From NCBI RefSeq assembly GCF_001194135.2, contig NC_068982.1, positions 27,589,640 to 27,653,639 on the forward strand: a stretch of DNA of 64,000 bases. Direction: 5' to 3'. The notes beneath the pieces are model-generated. The model had not been told where the DNA came from. It did no database searches and was given only the letters and a program-made list of their open reading frames with translations. The translations under genes were made by a program, and so were the position numbers. Shown one piece after another: positions 2,795 through 60,448 of the stretch (position 1 is the first letter of the stretch; each line of letters starts with the position of its first letter). This DNA comes from Octopus bimaculoides. Its lineage: Eukaryota.

Positions 2795-3713
2795 GCCAGC
2801 TCTTGCTTCACCCAAATGCTCAGTAATATCTCCTGCCACATTTTTCTGTGCATTAAGAGCTTATATGGCATTACTTCTAACAACATATCCAGTTATGAAG
2901 ATGATACCTTTTCACTTTTTTTTTTAACTCTTTGTGTAGTGGTTTCATCTACATTCAACCAAAACATCTCATGCAAGACCTGCACAACTCTGTGAACAGA
3001 GTCTTTAAAAACATCCTTCAATGGGGGTATATGAAAACTTAGTTTCTTTTGACATCAATAAGACTCATCACTACACATTTCCAGGAAAAAGTCTTGCATT
3101 TCTTCTTCTCTACACATGAACAACACAACTAGACCTGCAAACATGCAACAAATACTAGGCCTCACAATCTTGGATGATCTTTCAAAGTGACTTTATATAT
3201 ATAATACTGCATTACAGAGATTAGGATCCCTCGTAAGAACAGAAAATAATTTAGCCTTGATCAATTGCATACTCTTTACAAAACTCAATAAGATCCATGC
3301 TGGAGTACTCATCACATATAAAAGATGGTTATTCAACTTGGCAAAGATTCACTTACCAATATGCAAGAATCCTTGCTCACAGACATGCTGTTTTCTCTAT
3401 CATGCTTGTTTTCTCTGTCACTTTTACTGAAGCTATAACTGTATTCTGCTCCTCTGATTTAGCTAACTGGATACTCCCTCTCAGTAGGCTCACTCAACAT
3501 ATGAGTTTCTTCTACTATTACCTTTATTGCATCTCTTCTCTCAGATTCTGCATCGAATACTTTATTCAAGCCTTCTAACCTAGACCAACTTTTATGATTT
3601 TTTTCATCACCTTTATTTTACCTTAATATATTGATTGACAAATGTTCATACTTAACAACAACCACATTGATCTGATTAGTCTAGGAGGACCTACAAAAAT
3701 TATAAGTACTAGC

Positions 3714-4151
3714 TCTCTTTACTCTTTAACTTGTTTCAGTCATTTGAATGTGGCCATGCTGGAGCACCGCCTTTAGTCGAGCAAATCGACCCCCAGGACT
3801 CATTCTTTGTAAGCCTAGTACTTATTGTATCGGTCTCTTTTGCCGAACCACTATGTGACGGGGACATAAACACACCAGCATCGGTTGTCAAGTAATGCAA
3901 GGGGGACAAACACAGACACACAAACATACACACACATCACATANNNNNNNNNNNNNNNNNNNNNATATATATATATATATATATATACAATGGGCTTCTT
4001 TCAGTTTCTGTCTACCAAATCCACTCACAAGGCTTTGGTCAGCCCAAGGCTATAGTAGAAGACACTTGCCCAAGATGCCCAGCAGTGGGACTGAACCCGC
4101 AACCATGTGGTTGGTAAGCAAGCTACTTACCACACAGCCACTCCTGCGCCT
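3714..4151 (-). mobile_element. Family B SINE; N-gap 3944-3964 inside its microsatellite
   Basis: Reverse complement of 49544-49950. Confidence 0.85.
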
Positions 4152-9732: not shown

Positions 9733-9829
9733 CTAAATATAGATGATAAATAACAATTAAAGAGATATTTCACACCAAAAATTGCATATTGATATTTCAT
9801 ATACATAGTATCAGTCCTCAGCCCCTCTT

Positions 9830-11325
9830 GTTCATTATATTCCTCCAGGCAAGAACAGGGGAATTCAAGACAGGCTGCCCAGAGCTCCTCTATGCTGATG
9901 ACCTTGCTCTAATAGCCGAGTCACTACCAGAACTAGAGACGAAGTTTCAGGTGTGGAAGCAAGGATTAGAATTGAAGGGCCTTAGGGTGAACCTAGCAAA
10001 AACTAAAGTCTTAGTAAGTAGGAAGGCTGTCAAATCCCAAACCCCTTCATGTAGATGGCCCTGCTCGATCTGTAGAAAAGGCATGGGTAGAAACTCCATA
10101 GGATGTACCCAGTGTAAGCTATGGACACATAAAAGGTGCAGCAATATCAAAGGAAGGTTAACCAGGAAAACAGATCTTGTGTGTGGCAGATGCACAGGGG
10201 CAATAAACACTGAAGATGTACAGAAAACAGATTCCATCATATGCCAGGGGAAGAAACTAGAAGTAGTTAATAGCTTCTGCTACCTAGGCGACCAAGTCTG
10301 TAGTAGGGGTGGTTGCTCTGAGACTGTAGCAGCTAGAATAAGAATAGCTTAGGCAAAGTTCAGGGAGTGCCTGCTTCTGCTGGCAACTAAGGGCCTCTCG
10401 CTCAGGGTGAAAGGTAAACTGTATGATGCATGTGTGTGAACAGCCATGCTACACAACAGTGAAACAAGCCATGACTGATGAGGACATGCATAGGCTTGAA
10501 AGAAATGAAGCTAGTATGATTCACTGGATGTGTAATGTCAGTGTGCACATACAACAGAGTGTAAGTGCCCTGAGAGAAATGCTAGGCAAAAGAGGCATCA
10601 GATGTGGTGTGCAAGAGAGACAACTGCGCTGGTATGGCCATGTGCTACATATGGATGAGGACAGTTGTGTGAGGAAGTGCCACTCCCTAACTGTGGAAGG
10701 AACCTGTGGAAGAAGTAGACTCAGGAAGACATGGGATGAAGTGGTGAAGATGACCTTCGAACATTGAGCCTCACAGAAGCAATGATAGGAAACTGAGACC
10801 TTTGGAGATATGCTGTGATTGAGAAGACCCGACAACTAAAGTGAGATCACAGCCATGCATGTCTGGCCCAGTTAAAAGTATCCCTGATGTGTTGGGCGAT
10901 ATGATGTGCTTGAGAAGACCTGTTGAGTCAAGTAAAACCAATATCATAGCTGTGGCCAGTGATCCCTGACTGGCTCCCATGCTAGTGGCATGTAAAAAGC
11001 ACCATCCAAATGTGGTTGATGCCAGGTCTGCCTGACTAGCCCCTGTGCCGGTGGCACATAAAAAGCAACATCCAAACATGGCTGATGCTAGTACCCGCTA
11101 ACTGGCTCCCATACCAGTGGCACATAAAAAGCACGATCTGAACGTGGCCAATGCCAGTACCCACTGACTGGCGTCTATGCCGGTGGCACGTAAAAAGCAC
11201 TATCCGAACGTGATTGATGCCAGGCCCGCCTGACTGGATCCTGTACCAGTGGCATGTAAAAAGCACCCACTACACTCTCGGAGTGGTTGGCATTAGGAAG
11301 GTAAACAATGATGATGATGATGATA
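9830..11325 (+). mobile_element. 5'-truncated RTE-clade LINE (RT C-half with PHD-like insert, 3'UTR with 66-bp tandem array, (GAT)n tail)
   Basis: LLYADDLALIAES, GLRVNLAKTKV, FCYLGD and LRWYGHV motifs with stops and frameshifts; ends in gatgatgat. Confidence 0.9.
10956..11266 (+). repeat. 66-bp tandem array, about 4.7 units
   Basis: Unit starts at 10956, 11022, 11088, 11154 and 11220; conserved core GTGGCA(C/T)(A/G)TAAAAAGCA. Confidence 0.9.
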
Positions 11326-11340
11326 TATATATATATATAT

Positions 11341-12590
11341 ATCATCATCATCATCGTTTAACGTCCGCTTTCCATGCTAGCATGGGTTGGACGATTTGAC
11401 TGAGGACTGGTGAAACCGGATGGCAACACCAGGCTCCAGTCTGATTTGGCAGAGTTTCTACAGCTGGATGCCCTTCCTAACGCCAACCACTCAGAGAGTG
11501 TAGTGGGTGCTTTTACGTGTCACCCGCNNNNNNNNNNNNNNNNNNNNNNNNNNNNNNNNNNNNNNNNNNNNNNNNNNNNNNNNNNNNNNNNNNNNNNNNN
11601 NNNNNNNNNNNNNNNNNNNNNNNNNNNNNNNNNNNNNNNNNNNNNNNNNNNNNNNNNNNNNNNNNNNNNNNNNNNNNNNNNNNNNNNNNNNNNNNNNNNN
11701 NNNNNNNNNNNNNNNNNNNNNNNNNNNNNNNNNNNNNNNNNNNNNNNNNNNNNNNNNNNNNNNNNNNNNNNNNNNNNNNNNNNNNNNNNNNNNNNNNNNN
11801 NNNNNNNNNNNNNNNNNNNNNNNNNNNNNNNNNNNNNNNNNNNNNNNNNNNNNNNNNNNNNNNNNNNNNNNNNNNNNNNNNNNNNNNNNNNNNNNNNNNN
11901 NNNNNNNNNNNNNNNNNNNNNNNNNNNNNNNNNNNNNNNNNNNNNNNNNNNNNNNNNNNNNNNNNNNNNNNNNNNNNNNNNNNNNNNNNNNNNNNNNNNN
12001 NNNNNNNNNNNNNNNNNNNNNNNNNNNNNNNNNNNNNNNNNNNNNNNNNNNNNNNNNNNNNNNNNNNNNNNNNNNNNNNNNNNNNNNNNNNNNNNNNNNN
12101 NNNNNNNNNNNNNNNNNNNNNNNNNNNNNNNNNNNNNNNNNNNNNNNNNNNNNNNNNNNNNNNNNNNNNNNNNNNNNNNNNNNNNNNNNNNNNNNNNNNN
12201 NNNNNNNNNNNNNNNNNNNNNNNNNNNNNNNNNNNNNNNNNNNNNNNNNNNNNNNNNNNCCCAGGCTATTCTTATTCTAGCAGCTACACTTTCAGCGCAC
12301 CCACCCCCACTACTAACTTGGTCGCCCAGATAGCGGAAGCTATCGACTACCTCTAGTTTTTCACCCTGGAATGAGATAGAAGTTGTTTCCTGTTTGTTTG
12401 CAGTCTTTATTGCACCTGAACATCTGCCACAAACAAAAACTAACTTGCTAGTTAACCTGCCTTTGATGTTGCTGCACCTCTTATGTGTCCATAGCTTGCA
12501 CCGGGTACATCTTATAGAGTTACTACCTACTCCTTTTCTACATACTGAGCAGGGCCATCTACCTATACAGTTAAAATTTACAGGAAGCAA
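11341..12590 (-). mobile_element. RTE-clade LINE, same family, inverted; interior lost in N-gap 11528-12259
   Basis: 3'UTR with (ATC)n tail left of the gap; RT/PHD segment WPCSVCRKGVGSNSIRC...SFRYLGD right of the gap; continuity across the gap is inferred. Confidence 0.8.
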
Positions 12591-14851: not shown

Positions 14852-15002
14852 CTGACTTATGACCAACAAAGGTTGCAGCACATTTGCCAGTGTCAGCAGC
14901 CCAAACTTTCAGTTGCATATCTGCACTGCCACTCAAAACAACAATTCCTGATGGGAATAAACGACACGTGTTGACCTCACCAACATGGCCTGTTAAGTTG
15001 CG
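14852..15002 (-). CDS. PAAF1: PAAF1 coding exon 6 (RNLTGHVGEVNTCRLFPSGIVVLSGSADMQLKVW...GHKS)
   Basis: ttgcag/gtaaaa; 151 nt; WD40 repeat matching GHVFDVNCCRFFPSGLVVLSGGMDAQLKIW. Confidence 0.97.
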
Positions 15003-15323
15003 CTGCAATTAAATCAATGGATTTCAGATTTATAATTAAAATGTAAAAAAAAATAATTACTGCAAATATCTCAGCTTATTCATGTTGTAGCTATTGTAGA
15101 TCTGAGCTAATTGAAGGAACATTTATGTGAGTGATAATGAGCCTGTAATACACATACTGGCAGTGTAACTTCAGAGAAGGTCTAAATTCAATATGGCTTT
15201 AACTTTGTAACTCTTTTGATGAACTGAACTTTTAGTCAAAAATAAAGGAATTTTAAAATGAAATAAATAAATAAATGAAATATTTAAAAATCAATTTTAA
15301 GTTTCTGTTTATTGAATACTTAC

Positions 15324-19499: not shown

Positions 19500-19655
19500 C
19501 TAAAGAAGTAAATTTTATATAATGGATTAATATGGATACAGAGAAGATGAAATACTGCAAAGAATAACTAACTATAATCTGAACAGAACTAAATTAAATA
19601 AAATATGAAGATGAAAGTTATAATTTATCAAAGCTTATGTGAACAAAGTAATTCA

Positions 19656-20010
19656 TCATCATCGTTTAACATCCGCTTTCCATGCTAGCATGGGTTGGAC
19701 GATTTGACTGAGGACTGGTGAACCAGATGGCTACACCAGGCTCCAATCTGATTTGGCAGAGTTTCTACAGCTGGATGCCCTTCCTAATGCCAACCACTCC
19801 GAGAGTGTAGTGGGTGTTTTTACGTGCCACCGGCACGAAGGCCAGTCAGGAGGTACTGACAACGGCCACGCTCGAAATGGTGTATTTTAGGTGCCACCTG
19901 CACAGGAGCCAGTCCAGCGGTACTGGCAACGAACTCGCTCGAATGTCTTTTCACGTGCCACTGGGCGATGTTGGTAACGATCACGCTCAAATGGTGCTAT
20001 TTACGTGCCC
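19656..20010 (-). mobile_element. RTE-family 3'UTR / RTE-dependent short element with (GAT)n tail
   Basis: Near-identical to 11341-11527, 27755-28020(+), 37799-37982, 46087-46378, 48340-48680 and 60205-60448 (CCATGCTAGCATGGGTTGGACG...CAGCTGGATGCCCTTCC). Confidence 0.85.
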
Positions 20011-33350: not shown

Positions 33351-35182
33351 TTGATAACTAGAAGTGTTTATTTTTAATTGCTGGTTTTGGAGGAAGGGGA
33401 AGTGTTCCAGATCTTCTCAAGCTCTCCTAAACTGGTGAAATTGATACCATTCATGTTCCTCTTGTCTCTTTGCTTGTCAACACATGTGGGGGGAAAAAGG
33501 AAGGAGGAAATCCCAGAGAGTTAATGTTCTGGAATGGAAGGAAAGACTGAGTATAGTAATTAGTGCAGGACCTGGGGGTGTTTGGACACAGCAAAGGGGA
33601 TGAGCTGATGTGGAGCAAGTAGAACACAAAAACCTGAATGTGGATGGCCTGAGGGTTGTCTGCTCTGAGGAGCCAAGGCTGTTATAATAGCAGCAGAAAA
33701 GGCAGAGACAAGGAGACAGTGAGCCAGAGCTGGAGCATGTCTATGTAATTTTAAGCCAATCAGTCAGATGGCTTTTTTTCTGGATGTGGCCTAGGATGTC
33801 TGTGTGCAGCAGCTACATGGTCTTAGATGCGAGTACAATACTTCATTATGACCTGCACTTGTGATTTGTAGAGTGTTAGCAATTGTTAGAGGCTGAAGTA
33901 ATCATCATTTAATGTCCTCCTTCCATGCTGGCATAGGTTAGATGGTTTGACAGAAGCTGGCAAGTGAGGGGACTGCCCCAAGTTCTACTGTATGTTTTGG
34001 CATGTGGCTGGATGCCCTTCCTAATGCCAACCACTTTGCAGAGTGTAATGGGTGTTTTTTTATATGGCAACAAGAGCCAGTAAGGTCACCAAGTAACTGA
34101 GGCAGGGTGTGGTATTAAGGGAGGTGGCTTTGTGTCAGGTAATGAATGAATAGAGGAGCAGAAATGGATGTCTTGCAGTAGAGCGGATCCATATCTACTT
34201 CAGTTGAAGAGAGAGAAAGGTGGGTGATAAGATGGTGAAGGAGTGACAGAGCATAGACTCCAAGTTACAGGATAGTGTATATAAGTGAAGTTGACCCAGG
34301 GTTTGGGTAGAGTGAGTGGATGGGTAAGTTTGTGAGATTGCAAAAGGAGAGTGGAAGATGGAAAGGAGGGGACATGTAGTGAGTGGACACAGTTTGAGGG
34401 AGCAGGTGTTAGCAGGATATGGTATGAGGAAGAGATTCAACAGGGACATATTGTGTACAGGTAGGTTTACAAGGGTGCAGAGAGATAGCAAGGAGGGGAA
34501 TACAGCCAGTGGTGAACAGGTGATAAGAAGGGGAGATGTTAGGATGATGGGATGTGAGGGAGCGTTTTGTCAGGGACATATTGATTGCAGGGGTATGGAC
34601 ATAAATGACATACCTTATGACTTAATTTTACTTACCTAGATGGGTTTTCTCAATATAAATAATATCAAATACAATAAAAAAGAAAGTATTTAAGTGGCTG
34701 AATAATAAGTTAATTAGTCAAAAGGAAGGCATTGAGCCAGCAGAATCATTCAGACGCTATTCAGAAAGCTTAACAGCATTTTGACCATCTTTACATTCTG
34801 ATTTCAAATGCTACCAAGGTCAACTTTGCCTTTCATCCTTTCAGGGGTCAATAAAATAAGTACCAGTTGAACACTTGGGTTGATATAATTGATTTACCCC
34901 CCTCCCCCAAAATTGCTGGCCTTGTGCCAAAATTTGAAATCAGTCAGTTTGTCAAAAGGAGAAAGACAATAACCATCATCTCTGCAGACCTTTCCACACT
35001 GACAAGAACGCTGCATTGAATGTTCAGTTTGAACAGTTTTACATGAATACTTGCAATGAAAACATGAAAGCAGAGACTGTTGGTTAGCCCTGAGATTAAG
35101 TAAACCTCTGATTAAGAGCAATTCATTCATGATAAAGGTTGAAGGATATGCTGATCTCAAGAACAATATTACTTTTCTCTAT

Positions 35183-35389
35183 TTTACTCTCTTTTACTTG
35201 TTGCAGTCATTTGACTGTGGCCATGCTGGAGCACCGCCTTTAGTCGAAGAAATTGACCCCAGGACTTATTTTTTGTAAGCCTAGTACTTATTCTATCTTT
35301 TGCCAAACCGCTAAGTTACGGGGACATAAACACACCAGCATCGGATGTCAAGTGATGTTGGGAGGACAAACACAGACACACAAACATAT

Positions 35390-35438
<49 letters not shown>

Positions 35439-35600
35439 TAAGACAGGCTTCTTTCAGTTTCCATCTACCAAATCCACTCACAAGGCTTTGGTCGGCCCGA
35501 GGCTATAGTAGAAGACACTTGCCCAAGATGCCACGCAGTGGGAATGAACCTGGAACCATGTGGTTGGTAAGCGAGCTACTTACCACACAGCCACTCCTGT
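35183..35600 (-). mobile_element. Family B SINE
   Basis: Reverse complement of 49544-49950. Confidence 0.85.
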
Positions 35601-37798: not shown

Positions 37799-37982
37799 TC
37801 ATCATCGTCGTTTAACATCCGCTTTCCATGCTAGCATGGGTTGGACGATTTGACTGAGGACTGGTGAAACCAGATGGCTACACCAGGCTCCAATCTGATT
37901 TGGCAGAGTTTCTACAGCTGGATGCCCTTCCTAACGCCAACCACTCCGAGAGTGTAGTGGGTGCTTTTACGTGCCACCTGCA
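37799..37982 (-). mobile_element. RTE-family 3'UTR element
   Basis: Same family, tail atcatcatcgtcg. Confidence 0.8.
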
Positions 37983-39640: not shown

Positions 39641-42007
39641 AAATACATTGAAAAGTTCTGATGATAATGAGCAGCCCTTTAAAATTCCAATACTTGCTTC
39701 AAACCACTCCATTGTTTCATTGTTTTTTTTTTATATTGTATTTGCAGTTATTCAATTAAATGCATTAGGATACATTACACTTCGTGATACTTTGTTTTTT
39801 TTTTTCTGTCAGCAAATGTGTGATAAAAATGCTTTTTATGGTTTCAGCAATGCTTCTCACGTAGGTTATGTTCAATAATATTGCAACCTCCTTGAACCCC
39901 TGCTTGTTCTTTAACAATTATTATAGTTTATTATCTGTAATATGTGGGAAAATTTTAACTCTAATATAAAATTTAGCTCAAAGTAATTAGTTATTGAAGT
40001 GTTTAGTCCAGCTATTATAATTACAACAGTTGTTTCTTTATATTTCTTTTTACACTAGAGCCAGTTCATTAAAACAATGAAACATACAGAAATATGACAA
40101 AAGATGTGAGAATAAACATAGCAAAGTTATATTAAAATGAGGGTAGGGAAAGAAATATTATGCAGTATGTTAAAACTTTAAATATTTTAAACTTGCACAA
40201 AATAACTAAATGGTCATATATAACAGATATAATTTAAAGAAACAAGAAATAGGTGCTAACCCAATCACACNNNNNNNNNNAGGTAAGCAGAGTTAGCAGT
40301 TATAGTAACCAACTAAGGGATAAAATATCCATATTTACTATTGGTATCAGTTACCTGTGCTATCTCTGGGTATGGTTATGCAGGTACACTATGCTTGTAG
40401 AGTACAGGTAACAACAGAATAAACAAAAGTTTATCAGGAATCAAATTTAAATAATCAGAAAATGGAGAAAACTTTAGATCAACAAACAAATCACTTGGAC
40501 CACATCTGTAGCTTATTATTAAATACAAAATATGACTTAGTGTAATAGTCAGTATTTGTTTTATATTGGCTTCTTTTATTGGCCTTGTCCACAGGTTTGG
40601 TTTATAACAGTTCCAGAACTCATCTTGAACTTTTACTCTATCAACAAGTATATTCAACAAACATTTCTGTTGTTCCTTTTATTCAAATACTTCATAGTCA
40701 GTTCACACTTTAGCTTTACTTTTGTTGGTTTTGAGGCTGCTTTTCAAATTGAATGCAGTATCTTCTTCACAATAATCAATACATCATTGAGGGAAATGGT
40801 TTGTGTGCTTGCTTTCTGCAATAAAGGAAAATATAAAATATTGCAAATGTTTTAATAAAGAATTAGTTGACTGATGGTTTTTGATGATGACAGTGACAAC
40901 AATGACTGTTATTATTACTATTACTAGTGGGACCTGTGGAAGTTCCACAGAATAGAAATGATTAAGAGAAGCTACTTAAGAAGAAAGGATGATTTGCATT
41001 TTTATTTTCATTTTGCTAGGCTATTTCACTTCCAGTCACAATAATATTTTATATGATTTTAAAATTTCCCTCTGCGAAGCACTTTATATTTCTCTCTTTC
41101 TCTCTACCTCTTCATTCCTTTCTTCATGTTTTTTCAAATTTCTCTCTTTCTCTTCACCTCTCACTTCCACTAACCACATGAGTGACAGCATAATGCATTG
41201 GCTGGCTATCTGCTCTCTCACTCATTCTCACATTCCCTCTTCTCTCTTGTTCCACCTCCTCCTCCTCTCTAACAAACTAAAGTGTGAAATGTGAAAGAAC
41301 AGGTAAAAGAAGAATATTATAGACTTAGTTCACACTGCTCCAGTTCACTCAGCTGTAGAAATGAGTTGCAATGTCATTTGTGCCAAACTGCATTGGCCTT
41401 TGCCTTACCCTTGGATAACATCAGTGGTGTGGAGAGGAGAGGCTGATATGCATGGGTGACTGCTGGTCTTCCAAAAACAACCTTGCCTGGACTTGTGCCT
41501 CGGAGGGTGACTTTCTTGGTGCAATCCCATGGTCATTCATGACTGAAGGGGGTCTTTACCCTTTACCCTTAAAGTGCAGTTAAAAAAAATACTTTTCATT
41601 ATCAACACACCACCACCACCACCACCACCACCACTATAGTTTTCAATAACAAAACTCATTTCATTTCAGTTCAGCTGTTTGTCTCATCATCATCATTTAA
41701 CATCCGTTGTCCATGTTAGCATGGGTTGGACAGTTTGACTGGGCTGGCACGCTAGAAGGCTATGCCAGGATCTAGTCTGGTTTGGCATGGTTTTCTACAG
41801 CTGGATGCCCTTCCTAGCGTCAATCACTCTGAGAGTGTAATGGTGCTATTTGCATGACACCAGTATCTGCCACGACTGCGATTTTGCTCGGCTTGATGGG
41901 TCTTCTTCTGAAGCACAGCATAATGCCAAAGGTCTTGGTTATAGCCTCTGTGACACTCAATACTCGAAAGTAGCTTGGTCATTTTGCCTCCATGAAGCCC
42001 AACACTC

Positions 42008-42430
42008 AAAAGGAGTGGCTGTGTGATAAGTAGCTTGCTTACCAACCACATGGTTCCGGGTTCATTCCCACTGCGTGGCACTTTGGGCAAGTGTCTCCTA
42101 CTATAGCCTCGGGCTGACCAAAGCCTTGTGAGTGGATTTGGTAGACGGAAACTGAAAGAGGCCCGTCATATATATGTATATATATATACATATATATATA
42201 TGTATGTGTGTGTATATGTTTGTGTTTGTCACACACACCCCCAGCATTGCTTGACAACTGATGGTGGTGTATTTACGTCCCCGTAACTTAGCGGTTCGGC
42301 AAAAGGGACCGATAGAATAAGTACTAGGCTTCCAAAGAATAAGTCCTGGGGTCGATTTGTTCGATTAAAGGCGGTGCTCCAGCATGGCCGCAGTCAAATG
42401 GCTGAAACAAGTAAAAGAGTAAAAAGAGAG
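42008..42430 (+). mobile_element. Family B SINE
   Basis: Near-identical to 49544-49950. Confidence 0.85.
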
Positions 42431-42559
42431 AGTCAAGAGAAGCTTATATTTTGTAAGGCCCAAAGAAGGTCCATTTAAAGAAATTAGACTTCATAGGGTA
42501 ACTGCTGCATTTGTTGACTATATAAACAGTTCGGCTGCTTGTTTCTCTGGAGATTGTCA

Positions 42560-42627
42560 GAATGATGTGGACGCCTCTGATGAGAACCCAATAAGGTTCG
42601 AAAATCGATTAAGATCATTTGTCATTT
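42560..42627 (+). ncRNA. Putative type I hammerhead ribozyme
   Basis: CTGATGA (42577-83), stem II GAACC/GGTTC, GAAA, palindromic stem III AATCGATT, cleavage triplet TTA (42609-11); stem I is weak. Confidence 0.6.
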
Positions 42628-43132
42628 TCCCAGTCTGTGGATAAATGGCTATAATTTGCCCTGTTTATAATTAGACCATATGTTACATACTAATATTAGA
42701 GCAAATGTTATGTCAGTTAGGAAAATAAATATAACAGGTTAATCAATAATAACCTTAATGCTAAAAACATGAAAATGCATAGTTGGAACTAATAACTTGC
42801 AGAGCTAATTAGACTATGGTTAGCTCAGTGCTGTCCTTGTATAACAACACTATAGGATCATAGCTGATGTAGAAAATAATGTTGGCTATATGGTCAAGAA
42901 GTCGGCTTGTCATGCATTTGACTCCAGGTTCAATCCCATTGCAATGAATGGCACCTTGATTCATTGTCTTCTACCATAGAATAAAGAACATGGATGAAAT
43001 CAAGTAAAGAATAACTACAGAAGTTTGTTAGGTGGACTGTTTAATCACAGGATGAGACAATTAGATGCAGCTATTTGGCTGCCAATGATTTGGCATGGCT
43101 GATCGGACAGTCAACCTGTTTTGGCACATCAG

Positions 43133-43171
<39 letters not shown>

Positions 43172-44243
43172 CATGTGTGTGCTGAAATGTGCACATAGAA
43201 TGAGTAAGAGTAAGTGAGAGAGAGAAGGATAGAGAGAGCAATCTATTTAATTGAATGCAATTGGTATAAACACTTTCCCTCTCCTCATGCACAACAATAA
43301 GAGAAATATGCTCATATTCATAAAGGAGAGAGTGTGGTAATGGTGAGAACGAGAGAACAATGAAATGTCTGATGTCAAATAAGTCTGCTTCAAGTCAGCG
43401 ATGCTAAATAGGTGACGCCAAAACAACATTTCATACCCACTTGACCCATTGCTTGGTTTAATACTGTCACCTAGCTATTGGAGGCCTTTGGCTGCATCCA
43501 CTCATTTACAGATATCTAAACTAGGTTTCAGGTCAGAGGATAAACTATGAGCAGTGATTTCTTCTTCCCTTTCCATCTCCTAGTCTTGGGGATACTGAAA
43601 AAGGTTACAGGTGCTGCCCTACCTCTTTTTAATTAAGGCAGAAAAAATGTGCTGTGAAGAATCATAGAAAAGCTGATGCAAAATAGTTTTAACAATGATT
43701 AAAATGTAAAATGTAGCTTCATTGTATAGCAAGGTGTGGAAGAACAATCTTAGAACTACAGAAGGAGAGTGTTGGGTAAAAAATGTGAACTGGTGGACTA
43801 TAAGAAAACAATTAGAAAAGAATAATTTGTGAAGGATATTGAATTTGTGTTGTGAGGCTAGAGATATAATCAGGATTAACTTAAGTAATAATTTCATTAG
43901 GAATTTAAATCATACAAAATTCTTTCTTCAACTTGTTTTTTTTTTTTTTTAGCTTTAATACTAAATAACAAGATTCAGGACTAAAAGTACATCGTGGGTT
44001 TATATTTTTTAATATATTATGTAAATAAAGTCCGTGTGTTGACAGAATCATTAGCACACCAGGCAAAATGCTCAGTGTTATTTCATTTATCTTCACATTC
44101 TGAGTTCAAATTCAACCAAGTTGACTTTGCATTTTATCCTTTCAGGGTTGATAAATTAATTATGAGTTGAACACTGGGGTTGATAATCGAATTACCCTCC
44201 CCCAGAATTGCTGGTCTTGTGCCAAAATTTGAAACCAATATAT

Positions 44244-45487: not shown

Positions 45488-45571
45488 GATCAACAATGTA
45501 TTTGCTTCCAGCGAACCCTACAAGTCACTCCAGACATGATTCATCGGCTGGGGTTAGAGAAAGACCTTGAG
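45488..45571 (+). CDS. WDTC1: WDTC1 coding exon (DQQCICFQRTLQVTPDMIHRLGLEKDLE)
   Basis: tttcag/gtttgt; 84 nt; matches FERRYHVTDPFIRRLGLEAELQ. Confidence 0.93.
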
Positions 45572-46086: not shown

Positions 46087-46378
46087 TATCATCATCGTTT
46101 AACATCTGCTTTCCATGCTAGCATGGGTTGGATGATTTGACTGAGGACTGGTGAAACCAGATGGCTACACCAGGCTCCAATCTGATTTGGCAGAGTTTCT
46201 ACAGCTGGATGCCCTTCCTAATGCCAACCACTCAGAGAGTGTAGTGGGTGCTTTTACGTGTCACCCACACGAAGGCCAATCAGGCGGTACTGGCAACGGC
46301 CACGCTCAAAATGGTGTATTTTATATGCCACCCACACAAGAGCCAGTCCAGGGGCACTGGCAACGATCTCGCTCGATA
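46087..46378 (-). mobile_element. RTE-family 3'UTR element
   Basis: Same family; interrupts an older family A SINE. Confidence 0.8.
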
Positions 46379-46938: not shown

Positions 46939-48339
46939 ATGAGGAAGAAAGAGGAAAATGTATTTATTTCTTATTTTCAAATGTCAATTTATTATTTCAT
47001 GTGTAGCTATACATGTGAAAACTTCAAGTAAACTTTTCAGAAGTTCAAGTAAGGGGGTATTTTACAGTATAGCTGCTGTTGTTTAACCCCAGGTCAGACC
47101 TGATTGAGTAGATGTGCAATCAAAAGCAGGTCAGTCATGACCATGTCCATTTTGTTTGTTTTTTCTTTAGGTATTGTGTTTACCTCAGACTACACTGTCT
47201 TGTGTGTTCTGATTTTTTAGACAGAAGGTAAAAATTTCATTGAAGTTTGGCCTCTGGTTGAATTGCCTATGTAGAGCAGAGGCTCTCAACCTTTTTAATA
47301 CCTGGGCCAGATCCAGAACCTGGTTACTCTTTAGGGGGCTGCACCAAAAAAAATAATAAAAAACAGAAGTCAATGTTAGACACCTAACATTAACACTTTT
47401 GATACCAACCTGCCTTATGCTGCCCTTGGTTCTATGACACAAACTTTCTGCTTTTAAAGTGATCTAAATTAAGACCTTTCATCAAAATTTCTTGCTAATT
47501 TATGTTCCAAACACCAGCTTAATAATGGCAACTAAATTCTTCATTATTTTCAAAACTAATTGAAAGAAAGGTAATCTATTTGAACAGAAATATGATAACA
47601 AAAATAATAAAAAGTTATTGTCGGCCAATAATCTGTTATCTTAATATGTAAATGTTAGTTATATATGTATTTTCTAATTTGGTATTTAATTAGCAATATA
47701 GTGAATAGGTGTGTTCTGTTATCTGGATAATGACGTTTTNNNNNNNNNNNNNNNNNNNNNNNNNNNNNNNNNNNNNNNNNNNNNNNNNNNNNNNNNNNNN
47801 NNNNNNNNNNNNNNNNNNNNNNNNNNNNNNNNNNNNNNNNNNNNNNNNNNNNNNNNNNNNNNNNNNNNNNNNNNNNNNNNNNNNNNNNNNNNNNNNNNNN
47901 NNNNNNNNNNNNNNNNNNNNNNNNNNNNNNNNNNNNNNNNNNNNNNNNNNNNNNNNNNNNNNNNNNNNNNNNNNNNNNNNNNNNNNNNNNNNNNNNNNNN
48001 NNNNNNNNNNNNNNNNNNNNNNNNNNNNNNNNNNNNNNNNNNNNNNNNNNNNNNNNNNNNNNNNNNNNNNNNNNNNNNNNNNNNNNNNNNNNNNNNNNNN
48101 NNNNNNNNNNNNNNNNNNNNNNNNNNNNNNNNNNNNNNNNNNNNNNNNNNNNNNNNNNNNNNNNNNNNNNNNNNNNNNNNNNNNNNNNNNNNNNNNNNNN
48201 NNNNNNNNNNNNNNNNNNNNNNNNNNNNNNNNNNNNNNNNNNNNNNNNNNNNNNNNNNNNNNNNNNNNNNNNNNNNNNNNNNNNNNNNNNNNNNNNNNNN
48301 NNNNNNNNNNNNNNNNNNNNNNNNNNNNNNNNNNNNNNG

Positions 48340-48680
48340 CTGGTATGGGTTGGCCGATTTGACTGAGGAATGGCGAACCAAATGGCTGCACCAGGCTCCA
48401 ATCTGATCTGGCAGAGTTTCTACAGTTGGATACCCTTCCTAATGCCAACCACTCCGAGAGTGTAGTGGGTGCTTTTACGTGCCACCGGCACGAGGGCCAG
48501 TCACACAGTACTGGCAACGGCCACGCTCAAAAAGGTGCTTTTTACATGCCACCTGCACAGGAGCCAGTCCAGCAGCACTGGCAACGACCTCGCTCGAATA
48601 ATTTTCTAACGTGCCACTGGCACAAGTACCAGTAAGGCGACGCTGGTAACGATCACACACAAATGGTGCTAGTGGCACGT
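48340..48680 (-). mobile_element. RTE-family 3'UTR element abutting N-gap 47740-48338
   Basis: Same family, includes tandem GTGCCAC units. Confidence 0.75.
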
Positions 48681-49543: not shown

Positions 49544-49705
49544 GGCGCAGGAGTGGCTGTGTGGTAAGTGGCTTGCTTACCAACCACATGGTTCCGGGTT
49601 CAGTCCCACTACGTGGCATCTTGGGCAAATGTCTTCTACTATAGCCTCGGGCCGACCAAAGCCTTGTGAGTGGATTTGGTAGACGGAAACTGAAAGAAGC
49701 TCGTC

Positions 49706-49773
<68 letters not shown>

Positions 49774-49950
49774 ATTTGTGTGTATTTGTGTGTCTGTGTT
49801 TGTCCTCCTAGCATTGCTTGACAAACAATGCTGGTGTGTTTATGTCCCTGTCACTAGGCTTACAAAGAATAAGTCCCGGGGTCGATTTGCTCGACTAAAG
49901 GTGGTGTTCCAGCATGGCCGCAGTTAAATGACTGAAACAAGTAAAAGAGT
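49544..49950 (+). mobile_element. tRNA-headed SINE, family B, with internal (TA)n/(TG)n
   Basis: GGCGCAGGAGTGGCTGTGTGG head, GGGTTCAGTCCC B box, CORE-like CTTGGGCAA(G/A)TG, tail GTAAAAGAG; copies at 3714-4151(-), 35183-35600(-), 42008-42430, 59455-59900 and 5278-5527(-). Confidence 0.85.
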
Positions 49951-49959
49951 ATATGTCAG

Positions 49960-53370: not shown

Positions 53371-53517
53371 CTTTTATAATAATAATAATTATAATAAACC
53401 AGTCTAAATGTTTATCTGTGACAAAGATTGGATTTGTTCCATTTTGCCTTTTTTTTCCTCTCTTTTAAATACTTTCTTACACACATTTAACCTTATAACA
53501 TTTACATTTCCTCACAG

Positions 53518-57891: not shown

Positions 57892-60204
57892 TCAATCAAG
57901 TAGTTCTATGTTTAGAGACATCCCAGTCTTGACCATCTTGTCTTTTTCTATATTCAGATTATATTTGCTCTGCATTTTTCTTTAAGATGCTTTTGTATGA
58001 TCTAGTTGCTGTCTCTAGCAGGTCATGGATTCTCCCTTGTTGATTATTCCCAAACACATTCTGGCCACGACTATCCTGTTTTAATTTCAGGAATAATGTG
58101 CCCTGGATTACATTATTCAATGTATCCATTTTTAAAGATGGCAGTGTGTGGCTTGAAAGAGATTTGGCTGCTATTATTAGCAGCTTGATAAAACATATAA
58201 AAGTGTTGGTGGTAGTGCTGGTGGAGGTAGTGGTGCTGTGATATCTGTCTCAGTTATAGTAACAATAGGAGTGGTTATTATGACAAAGACCTAATTTTGA
58301 TTGTCCGTTTAATGAATCTCCTCTTTGAAAACCACTGCATCAATTTCATTCTGTTGAACTGTTCTAACGGTTGTTATCAGAAGAGCAATTATTGTTATGG
58401 TTTAACCCCAAATCAATCATGATGAAGCAGACATATGATCAAAAGCAATTTCAGCTGTGACCATTATTGTCTTTTTAGGGGTATCAAGAGCAATATGATC
58501 TAATTTGTCCATTATTTTTGAAAAATGGAAAGCTGTTTTTCAAAGTGGGATATGGCTGCTATTTCTAGTTGGCCAAGTAACTGCATAGGGACTTCTCCAT
58601 TGGCTGATGGTAACAATAGTGAAAATGGTAGGCAGCAACAGTAACAATGGTTTTATATTTAAAGTTGGTGACTACAATAAAAAAAAAACACTGCATTTGG
58701 TATTGTCTGTATTTTTATAAATGTTATTATCTACTAACTAATGCAGTTACTATATTTATATTACGAATACAAAAGCATCCACCCACTACCACACAGGATT
58801 TTGATACCGTACTTGCTATGGATACAACCATGGATGCTTGGTTAAGAAGCTTGCTTCGCAACCTCAAGGTTCAAGGCCTGATATTACTGAGTGATACTTT
58901 GGGAAAGTGTTCTCTGTCATAGCCTCAGGTTGACCGAAACCTTTTCAGTAAAATTTGATTGTCAGTGACTCTTTGGAAGCTCATTGGCCCTTTGGCTAAG
59001 ACCTAAGTGTTGTATTTCTATACATGCGTGTGTGTATGAGATGGAAAGGATCAGTTTGTCAAACAAAAATACCTAGCAGTATTCTGTTTTGCTCCTTTGC
59101 ACCCAGGTCAGCTTTACCTTTCTTCTTTTACTAGGTTAATAAAATAAGTGACAGACAAAGTAAAGGGAGTTGGGGAAGTGATATAAGTATATAAGGCATG
59201 CCCCATCATGACTGCAGTCCAGTTACTGAAACAAGTAAATAAAATAATAAGATAATATCTAGTAAGTAATGGGCTTCATTGAGCACTGACAATAGTATGT
59301 TTTTCCAGCTTCTATAAATGAAGCATACCAGGCATATTTTAGAAGTATCTCTCCAAATCAATAACTCCAATAGATATTTTGTAAAAAAAAAAGTCTGTGT
59401 CTTGAGCTGACAATCTCATTATAGTGCAGCTCATTCCAGCTTCCAAGATATTTTCGAACAACAATATATGTATGGTTAGGAAACTCACTTTGCAACTGTG
59501 TGGTTTTCAGTTTAGTCCCACTGCATGGCACCTTGACCAAGTGTCTTCTACTATAGATCTGTGTTGATCAATACCTTGTGAGTAGATTTGGTACATGCAA
59601 ACTGTGTGGAAGCCCATCGTGTGTGTGAGTGTGAATGATTACATGTTTATGTTTTTGTGTCTGTGTTTATCAAATACATGCACGCACCCACACGCCCACC
59701 ACTTGAGTTGACAACCAGTGCTGGTTTGTTTACATCTTCGTAACTTAGTGGTTTGACCCAAGAGACTGATAGAACAAGTATTAGCATTATTAAAAAAAAA
59801 AACTTAAGTATTAGGGGTGATTTGTTTGACTAAATCCCTTCAAAGTGTTGTCCCACATGGCTGCAGTCTAATGATTGAAACAAGTAAAAGATAAAAGAGA
59901 ACTAAAAGTATAAGACTTATCATTGAACAGGAGATCAATCCCTCACACAGTTAACTTCAGCTTCCACTGGTTCTCATTTTTAGCTAAGTGTGCTGGAGCA
60001 ATGTGAAATTAATTACCTTACTTGAGAACACATGTTACCCCATCTGTGAATTGGATCCACTAACAATTGTAAGGCAATACTTTGCCACACTCTTTTACTA
60101 GCTATTAACCAAAGTTAGCATAAATGATTTCCATCTTTTATGTATTATTGATTAACAAGATTCAATAATATATGATCGGTTCAGTCTTTATAGAATGAAA
60201 CACC

Positions 60205-60448
60205 ATCATTATCATAGTTTAACGTCCACTTTCCATGCTAGCATGGGTTGGACGGTTTGACTGAGGGCTGGCAAGCCAGAAGGCTGCACCAGGCTCCAAT
60301 CCGATCTGGCAAAGTTTCTACAGCTGGATGCCCTTCCTAATGCCAATCACTCGAAGAGTGTAGTGGGTGCTTTTTACATGCCACTGGCACAAGGGCCAGT
60401 TAGGCAGTACTGGCATCGACCACGCTTGAATGGTGCTTTTTACATGCC
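60205..60448 (-). mobile_element. RTE-family 3'UTR element
   Basis: Same family. Confidence 0.75.

Follow-up and report, generated by a model that had tools for sequence, protein, structure and literature searches.

A type-I hammerhead ribozyme motif in a solo copy of a retrozyme- or Penelope-like repeat near a WDTC1 homologue of Octopus bimaculoides, probably an inert relic

Hammerhead retrozymes and Penelope-like elements (PLEs) are already known to be widespread in invertebrates. Invertebrate type-I hammerheads have a helix III of 2 bp with a palindromic tetraloop, and a dimer mode has been reported where helix III is short and palindromic (PMC4209133, PMC7229834). The tandem repeats of metazoan retrozymes measure 150-450 bp, with a GC content below 45% (PMC7229834). 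The hammerheads of PLEs have a short helix I, down to 2 bp in D. virilis, and most genomic ones stand alone as remnants of truncated elements (PMC4209133). A 2026 preprint (10.64898/2026.07.22.740005) argues that retrozymes themselves derive from PLEs and are non-autonomous. Octopus genomes are rich in Penelope-like elements (PMC13282606, PMC8967140). We found no paper on hammerheads in cephalopod repeats, and the word is absent from the octopus repeat-annotation papers. The octopus family described here merits mention in repeat annotation; it adds a lineage and no new principle.

The window, that is, the whole stretch of 64,000 nucleotides of O. bimaculoides DNA that was analysed, is AT-rich and repeat-rich and carries on its + strand a full hammerhead core (C3 U4 G5 A6 U7 G8 A9, G12 A13 A14, A15.1-U16.1 and H17 = A). 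The core box C3-A9, CUGAUGA (CTGATGA in the DNA), was read from the sequence at 42577-42583 (+). It is followed by the helix II hairpin at 42584-42599 (+), in which GAACC (42584-88) and GGTTC (42595-99) form five Watson-Crick pairs, starting with G10.1-C11.1, around the 6-nt loop 2 CAATAA, and then by the core box G12 A13 A14 A15.1 (GAAA, 42600-42603, +), invariant in 5/5 copies of the repeat family presented below. Helix III, AAUCGAUU at 42603-42610 (+), is at the DNA level the 8-nt palindrome AATCGATT (42603-10) and consists of a 2-bp stem with a palindromic tetraloop, the 8-bp duplex being formed only in a dimer; U16.1 of the A15.1-U16.1 pair is located at 42610. H17 is the A at 42611 (+), and by standard hammerhead numbering the predicted scissile bond lies between 42611 and 42612.

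Helix I is the weak part of this copy. Its 5' strand, GCCT (positions 2.4-2.1), is located at 42573-42576 (+) and its 3' side at 42612-42619 (+), where AGAT (1.1-1.4) overlaps the ATCATT (42614-19) of a possible distal helix. Only two contiguous pairs were found, A42612:T42576 (A1.1-U2.1) and G42613:C42575 (G1.2-C2.2), against the about 4-6 bp of a type-I helix I, and the third position is mismatched (A1.3 vs C2.3). A distal extension is possible across an 8-nt bulge, with AATGAT at 42561-42566 (+) pairing with the ATCATT at 42614-42619. Loop 1 was not recognisable and loop 2 varied among the copies (CAAUAA, CAGUAA, CCAAAA), and no tertiary contact between loops 1 and 2, as known from canonical type-I hammerheads, could be recognised. 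Many PLE and mussel hammerheads also do without the canonical loop contacts (PMC4209133, PMC7229834). All the elements listed in a preliminary description of this DNA (CTGATGA, helix II, GAAA, the palindrome, A17 and a TATA-like sequence) were found in place, and its two proximal stem I pairs were seen, as was a possible distal helix, read here as AATGAT/ATCATT.

The bare pattern CTGATGA-N(10-40)-GAAA occurred in the window at chance level, with 3 matches vs 2.2 expected. In Markov-simulated sequence matched for composition, a loose structural descriptor gave 0.064 matches per 64-kb window, or about one per Mb. The strict descriptor, set from the literature before the relatives were examined (PMC4209133), comprised CUGANGA, G10.1-C11.1, GAAA and H17, with 4-6 bp in helix II, 4-8 nt in its loop and a perfect palindrome of 4-8 nt as helix III, and left helix I unconstrained. 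Its chance rate, a rough estimate from 8 hits in 4e6 simulated contexts, was ~7e-5 per 64-kb window, ~1e-3 per Mb of double-stranded DNA and ~2.6 per 2.5-Gb genome. The motif was the sole one of its type in the window when both strands were scanned.

The motif lies in a solo copy of a repeat unit, delimited by BLAST and by alignments A2 and A5 to 42470-42697 (+/-10 nt, + strand). The frame across the motif (which reads ...DVDASDENPIRFENRL...) is open for 73 codons, and a phmmer search of 1.84 billion representatives with this 73-aa frame gave three relevant matches, P0089 (E 1e-13), P0092 (E 1e-4) and P0093 (E 3e-4), in which the translated motif appears as DVDVFDESPIVFENRI, DVDAPDESPKRFEN and DVDASEENP, respectively; two other matches, P0090 and P0091, are repetitive proteins and irrelevant. 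P0089, P0092 and P0093 are spurious ORFs over DNA repeats. The unit has no coding capacity, its frames being interrupted by stop codons and by frameshifting indels. The gene calls of P0089 (L001 671-1258) and P0092 (L002 1243-1641) were flagged as not translating to the query with the standard table, and in-frame TAG and TGA are read through in both, so they are not proteins. A word-indexed protein search with the 73-aa frame returned nothing, nor did a six-frame concatenated alignment, and exact look-up of a 44-aa minus-strand ORF over the motif and of P0093 found neither on record.

Four further DNA copies of the surrounding unit were recovered through these matches, one in O. bimaculoides and three on two Logan contigs, with a tandem dimer among them. 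The first Logan contig, L001 (SRR11869384), carries two head-to-tail units with a period of ~280 nt and the motif in each: L001 819-1018 corresponds to window 42489-42692 (BLAST, 77%, E 8e-40) and L001 1098-1290 to window 42490-42684 (BLAST). The second, L002 (SRR11869391), carries one unit before the contig end. P0093 clusters with XP_014774269.1 of O. bimaculoides, which gave the locus L003 (GCA_001194135.2, CM046618.1), where one unit at 48255-48426 corresponds to window 42519-42689 (BLAST, 85.5%, E 5e-52) and is directly followed by (TA)n. The window and L003 each hold a single solo copy. Across copies the unit measures ~205-280 nt with 37% GC, and divergence among the five is 15-38%, similar to the Jukes-Cantor distance of ~0.2 at which an expansion of octopus Penelope-like elements has been placed (PMC13282606). 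The comparable copies share a common 3' end, just past ...CCATATGTTAC, and differ in their 5' starts; L002, which has diverged at its 3' end and whose contig ends soon after, stands outside this comparison.

Two other blocks of the unit are conserved. The TATA-like box ACTATATAAAC (consensus GTATATAAACAG), which the preliminary description had pointed out, is present at 42517-42527 (+) and conserved across the unit copies, with 6/60 deviating cells in alignment columns 64-75; it may have a promoter function. The 3' block GGCTAWAATTTGCCCTGTTTATAATTAKACCATATG at 42647-42688 (+), just after which the unit ends, has 3/60 deviations in its best 12-nt stretch. Twelve metagenome matches to a 19-mer from this block came without a hammerhead and are probably due to chance. 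Exact-pattern scans for the motif gave 0 matches in metagenome contigs and 0 in viral contigs. BLAST, a relaxed hammerhead descriptor and a covariance model made from the five copies each found no second unit copy within the 64-kb window. The family as treated here consists of the five copies reached in the window, L001, L002 and L003.

We compared the ribozyme region of the five copies. The window copy reads CUGAUGA, GAACC-CAAUAA-GGUUC and GAAA-AUCGAUU, with H17 A followed by AGAU, and the L003 copy CUGAGGA, GAACC-CAGUAA-GGUUC and GAAA-AUUGAUU, with H17 C and AGGU. In L002 the same elements are CUGAUGA, GAGCC-CCAAAA-GGUUC and GAAA-AUU, with H17 A and AGGU. The two units of L001 read UUGAUGA, GAGUC-CGAUAG-UGUUC and GAAA-AUCGAAU, with H17 A and AGAU (L001a), and CUGAUGU, GAGCC-UAAUAA-CGUCC and GAAA-AUAGAAU, with H17 A and AGAC (L001b). 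The core is perfect in 3/5 copies (window, L002 and L003), and each L001 copy has one core-damaging change, C3>U in L001a and A9>U in L001b. N7 varies between U and G, and H17 is C in L003 and A elsewhere. Helix III becomes AAUUGAUU in L003 and AAUU in L002, where four of its bases are deleted (AAUCGAUU to AAUU) with the palindrome preserved. The window and L003 ribozymes show six differences, each at a tolerated position: U>G at N7, a loop 2 change, A>C at H17 and, in the helix III loop, a C>U for which U.G is possible in the dimer; in helix I, C>U at 2.2 keeps a G.U pair and A>G at 1.3 gives back G-C.

Over the 12 core columns 2/60 cells deviate, where the remainder of the unit would predict 10-11 (permutation p 0.0004-0.003), and the three core-intact copies show 0/36 core deviations vs ~6 expected. 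The copies were found via a motif-containing query, by which conservation could be inflated; restriction to the query columns alone gave the same result, as did omission of the window. The TATA-like box and the 3' block are conserved as strongly as the core, and because these other blocks are equally conserved, conservation alone is no proof of catalysis.

The stems were less uniform. In helix II 88% of the cells are paired in the five copies, with G10.1-C11.1 invariant and 10.3 changing from A-U to G.U. Helix I has 63% of its cells paired over seven positions, and its family consensus is of 4 bp (A-U, G-C, G-C, U.G), the window copy having 2 bp because of the A at position 1.3. At position 1.3/2.3 two copies have C-G and one has U-A, and the window is one of the two with C.A. 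For the distal AAUGAU/AUYRUU helix, 83% of the cells are paired in the five copies, with one-sided wobble changes only. Covariation in the five copies was not significant, the two double-change pairs being reached in 118/500 shuffles.

The Rfam search of the whole window gave no family at gathering score, and a local search of 301 nt at E<=10 gave no hammerhead family (Hammerhead_1, HH9, HH10 and others). The covariance-model check proposed in the preliminary description had, in short, a negative outcome with the Rfam hammerheads even at E<=10. At the same threshold the Rfam hammerhead models matched none of the other family copies, and the whole repeat family is without the Rfam hammerhead match that is a standard criterion of membership. 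Because the other core-intact copies were missed too, the Rfam negative is uninformative for this variant; every copy, two other core-intact ones included, escaped the models, which implies that covariance-model scans alone under-count this class. The method, a protein-space search with a translated motif that recovered the family, may be of more use than the finding.

Thermodynamic folding did not favour the ribozyme. The 78-nt motif region folded no better than shuffled sequence (MFE z = -0.37), and for the 215-nt unit the MFE z-score was -0.28, not significant. The hammerhead fold of the window copy was evaluated at 0.0 vs an MFE of -14.4 kcal/mol, with an ensemble fraction of ~3e-10, and was unfavourable in every family copy. 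When two core copies were co-folded, an 8-bp intermolecular AAUCGAUU helix was obtained. RNAalifold on the five copies recovered helix II, the four proximal helix I pairs and the outer closing helix, plus a competing UGAU/AUCG pairing. This conserved pairing joins UGAU of the core (42578-42581) to AUCG of helix III (42604-42607), in columns 31-34 and 57-60 of alignment A4. It is retained in most of the 5 copies and, according to the model, would keep the monomer in an inactive fold.

The octopus unit was compared with the described hammerhead systems. Like metazoan non-LTR retrozymes (de la Pena and co-workers, PMC7229834), it carries a type-I hammerhead with a 2-bp helix III and palindromic tetraloop, and like them it shows a noncoding unit with 37% GC, which in L001 measures ~280 nt and forms a head-to-tail dimer. 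Unlike metazoan retrozymes, it was found here as one dimer and three solo copies, without long arrays and with both dimer cores damaged; its consensus helix I is of 4 bp vs the canonical 6 and its helix II of 5 bp vs 4, and it has no recognisable loop 1/loop 2 interaction. The common 3' ends and differing 5' starts of the comparable insertions look closer to target-primed 5' truncation than to randomly permuted circles. With the minimal hammerheads of PLE terminal repeats (Cervera & de la Pena 2014, PMC4209133) it shares a short helix I (4-5 bp in theirs, 2 bp in D. virilis), a conserved G10.1-C11.1 and the palindromic 15.2-16.2 and loop 3, the AAUU helix III of L002 being the fully minimal PLE-type form; as in PLEs, the motifs would be expected to act as dimers and are mostly dispersed singly. 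It differs from PLE hammerheads by having no extra nucleotide between A9 and 10.1 and a helix II of 5 bp vs 6-8, and from PLE terminal repeats in that no RT or GIY-YIG ORF adjoins the examined copies (for the window, +/-2 kb on the + strand).

HH9 and HH10 of amniotes (Rfam RF02275, RF02277) are, like the octopus motif, type-I hammerheads on the sense strand in or near a protein-coding gene. They are single-copy and deeply conserved at orthologous loci, with full helices and tertiary contacts, whereas the octopus motif belongs to a copy of a dispersed repeat and has no Rfam match. The octopus unit is also like Sm-alpha of Schistosoma and other satellite or SINE-like hammerhead repeats, which are short non-autonomous repeats with an internal type-I hammerhead. 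The loop 2 of Sm-alpha is a 6-nt CAA-rich loop that may resemble the octopus loop 2. The Sm-alpha hammerheads differ in their 6-bp helix I, tertiary contacts and efficient cleavage, and no sequence homology to the octopus unit was shown.

We consider it likely that the window holds a genuine type-I hammerhead in a solo, apparently 5'-shortened copy of a retrozyme- or PLE-type octopus repeat, and that this copy is an inert relic. The reading of the locus as a Penelope/retrozyme relic, already suggested in the preliminary description, gains from the four further unit copies, the tandem dimer and the conservation of the core beyond the rest of the unit. The small noncoding unit, its short helix I and palindromic helix III, and the common 3' end with variable 5' ends of the comparable insertions agree with what has been published on retrozymes and PLE-associated hammerheads (PMC7229834, PMC4209133). 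By analogy, the octopus family may behave like a metazoan non-LTR retrozyme, as a non-autonomous derivative of a Penelope-like element. Source elements arranged head to tail, as with the ~280-nt period of L001, would place two ribozymes on one transcript, and pairing of their palindromic helices III would give an active dimer. A cut after H17 would then produce unit-length RNAs, which a PLE-type reverse transcriptase could copy back to DNA, and the window copy would be left as an inert relic upstream of, or intronic in, the WDTC1 homologue. No RT or GIY-YIG remnant was seen beside any copy, the flanks of the other copies having been checked by eye only; because none adjoins any copy, the link to PLEs draws on analogy and on the literature. 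A PLE origin is compatible with this result because most genomic PLE hammerheads are solo motifs (PMC4209133).

A more extended reading, in which the repeats make up an undescribed cephalopod retrozyme family that is dimer-active and yields circular RNAs of ~280 nt, and whose dispersed copies affect host genes by occasional cleavage or exonisation, seems to us rather doubtful. As unlikely is a real repeat family whose hammerhead-like block was never a working ribozyme, was conserved for another role such as an internal promoter or recognition by an RT, and resembles a hammerhead by chance. The missing Rfam hammerhead match for any copy would agree with this, together with the hammerhead fold unfavourable in all copies, the UGAU/AUCG pairing favoured by RNAalifold, by which part of the core is sequestered, the equal conservation of other unit blocks, and the short helix I with no recognisable loop-loop contact. 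It is opposed by the strict descriptor, which at a chance rate of ~1e-3 per Mb would be unlikely to match anywhere in a few Mb of repeat library, and by the variation, which falls exactly at sites tolerated by hammerheads (N7, H17, loop 2, wobbles and the palindrome-preserving deletion in helix III); the tandem ~280-nt units with GC <45% are moreover the setting in which type-I hammerheads are known (PMC7229834). The least credible explanation is that the motif arose by pure chance in unique intronic DNA and never came from a ribozyme. The rate of ~1 match per Mb of the loose descriptor, the MFE z of -0.37 and the missing Rfam hit would be consistent with it, but the DNA is not unique, with motif-bearing units in O. 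bimaculoides L003 and on two other contigs, and the stricter descriptor gave p ~7e-5 per window; the family copies effectively refute it.

The preliminary description had also proposed that the motif could cleave WDTC1 pre-mRNA. In its strong form, an active self-cleaving ribozyme would cut the WDTC1 pre-mRNA or 5' region and regulate the gene, as proposed for HH9/HH10, which we regard as very improbable. The motif runs in the sense direction of the WDTC1 homologue with its core and helices II and III intact, and the distal AAUGAU/AUCAUU helix could close helix I. Against this stand the 2 proximal helix I pairs and a hammerhead fold that occupies ~3e-10 of the ensemble, a helix III that requires a dimer while a partner is absent within 64 kb, and single PLE-type minimal hammerheads in which in vitro activity was not detectable (PMC4209133). 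The motif belongs, in addition, to an ordinary copy of a dispersed repeat, and the exon 1 scans gave no support for a position inside the transcription unit. Cleavage as first suggested is unlikely with a 2-bp helix I, a fold ~14 kcal/mol above the MFE and no partner copy within 64 kb. An inert relic is instead expected, because there is no dimer partner within 64 kb, helix I is weak, the monomer fold is disfavoured and single minimal hammerheads showed no detectable activity in vitro; the window copy probably cleaves the WDTC1 transcript poorly or not at all.

The WDTC1 homologue was placed by its exons on the + strand. One at 45488-45571 covers residues ~16-44, with a clear acceptor and donor, and further WDTC1-homologous exons lie near 53515, 57327, 61803 and 63607 (+). 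The best database relatives are invertebrate WDTC1 proteins, with 77% for an unnamed transcript and 68% for Saccoglossus; the 77% relative sits on a transcript-sized contig, so that the orthologous intron is absent from the comparison. Relative to the first placeable exon (45488), the motif lies 2.9 kb upstream and in sense orientation. Regex and donor-site scans gave no convincing candidate for exon 1 and did not confirm the intron 1 position given in the preliminary description. A short ORF at 43287-43331, MHNNKRNMLIFIKER, followed by a GT donor, is loosely like the WDTC1 N-terminus and probably spurious. Near the motif there is no long ORF, and no Pfam domain was found in the three + strand frames of 40300-43300.

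The hammerhead unit is surrounded by other repeats. A tRNA-derived SINE of ~420 nt that contains a (TA)n/(TG)n microsatellite is present in five copies in the window, with 68-87% identity (42011-42430; 35176-35598, -; 3713-4145, -; 49549-49951, +; 59510-59900, +), and its L003 copies match the window ones at 90-97% identity. We considered a link between the hammerhead unit and the adjacent SINE at 42011-42430 and rejected this, the homology between SINE copies stopping at ~42430, which leaves roughly 40 nt up to the unit. On the other side, 42840-43170 holds a tRNA-like SINE fragment and then a (CA)n microsatellite, about 150 nt downstream. A second abundant repeat, of ~180 nt, was observed at 41684-41861 and in about 10 other places, with 75-81% identity in the window (for example 60206-60384, 37799-37978, 19653-19831, 11345-11524 and 46088-46265); its L003 copies are up to 97% identical, and it is found also at the end of L001 (1351-1539).

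We observed also that the unit copy of L003 overlaps a protein model. At 48170-48330 (O. bimaculoides CM046618.1) the last ~50 residues of XP_014774269.1 (LOC106871988) derive from a (GAT)n tract and the unit copy. The protein ends ...DASEENP exactly at the loop 2 sequence CCA/GTAAGG, which is like a consensus splice donor, and the unit copy in this model appears exonised or mis-annotated. The gene of XP_014774269.1 is placed at 10001-47140 in L003, and the coordinates are not quite in agreement.

Elsewhere in the window, fragments of non-LTR retrotransposons at 9789-10352 (+) and 11520-12590 (-) contain an RT end (YADD motif) and a Cys-rich zinc-finger-like tail, the fragment at 11520-12590 (-) being broken by a 732-nt N gap. 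A WD40-like exon at 14901-15008 (-), LQRNLTGHVGEVNTCRLFPSGIVVLSGSADMQLKVW, points to another gene that precedes the WDTC1 homologue upstream.
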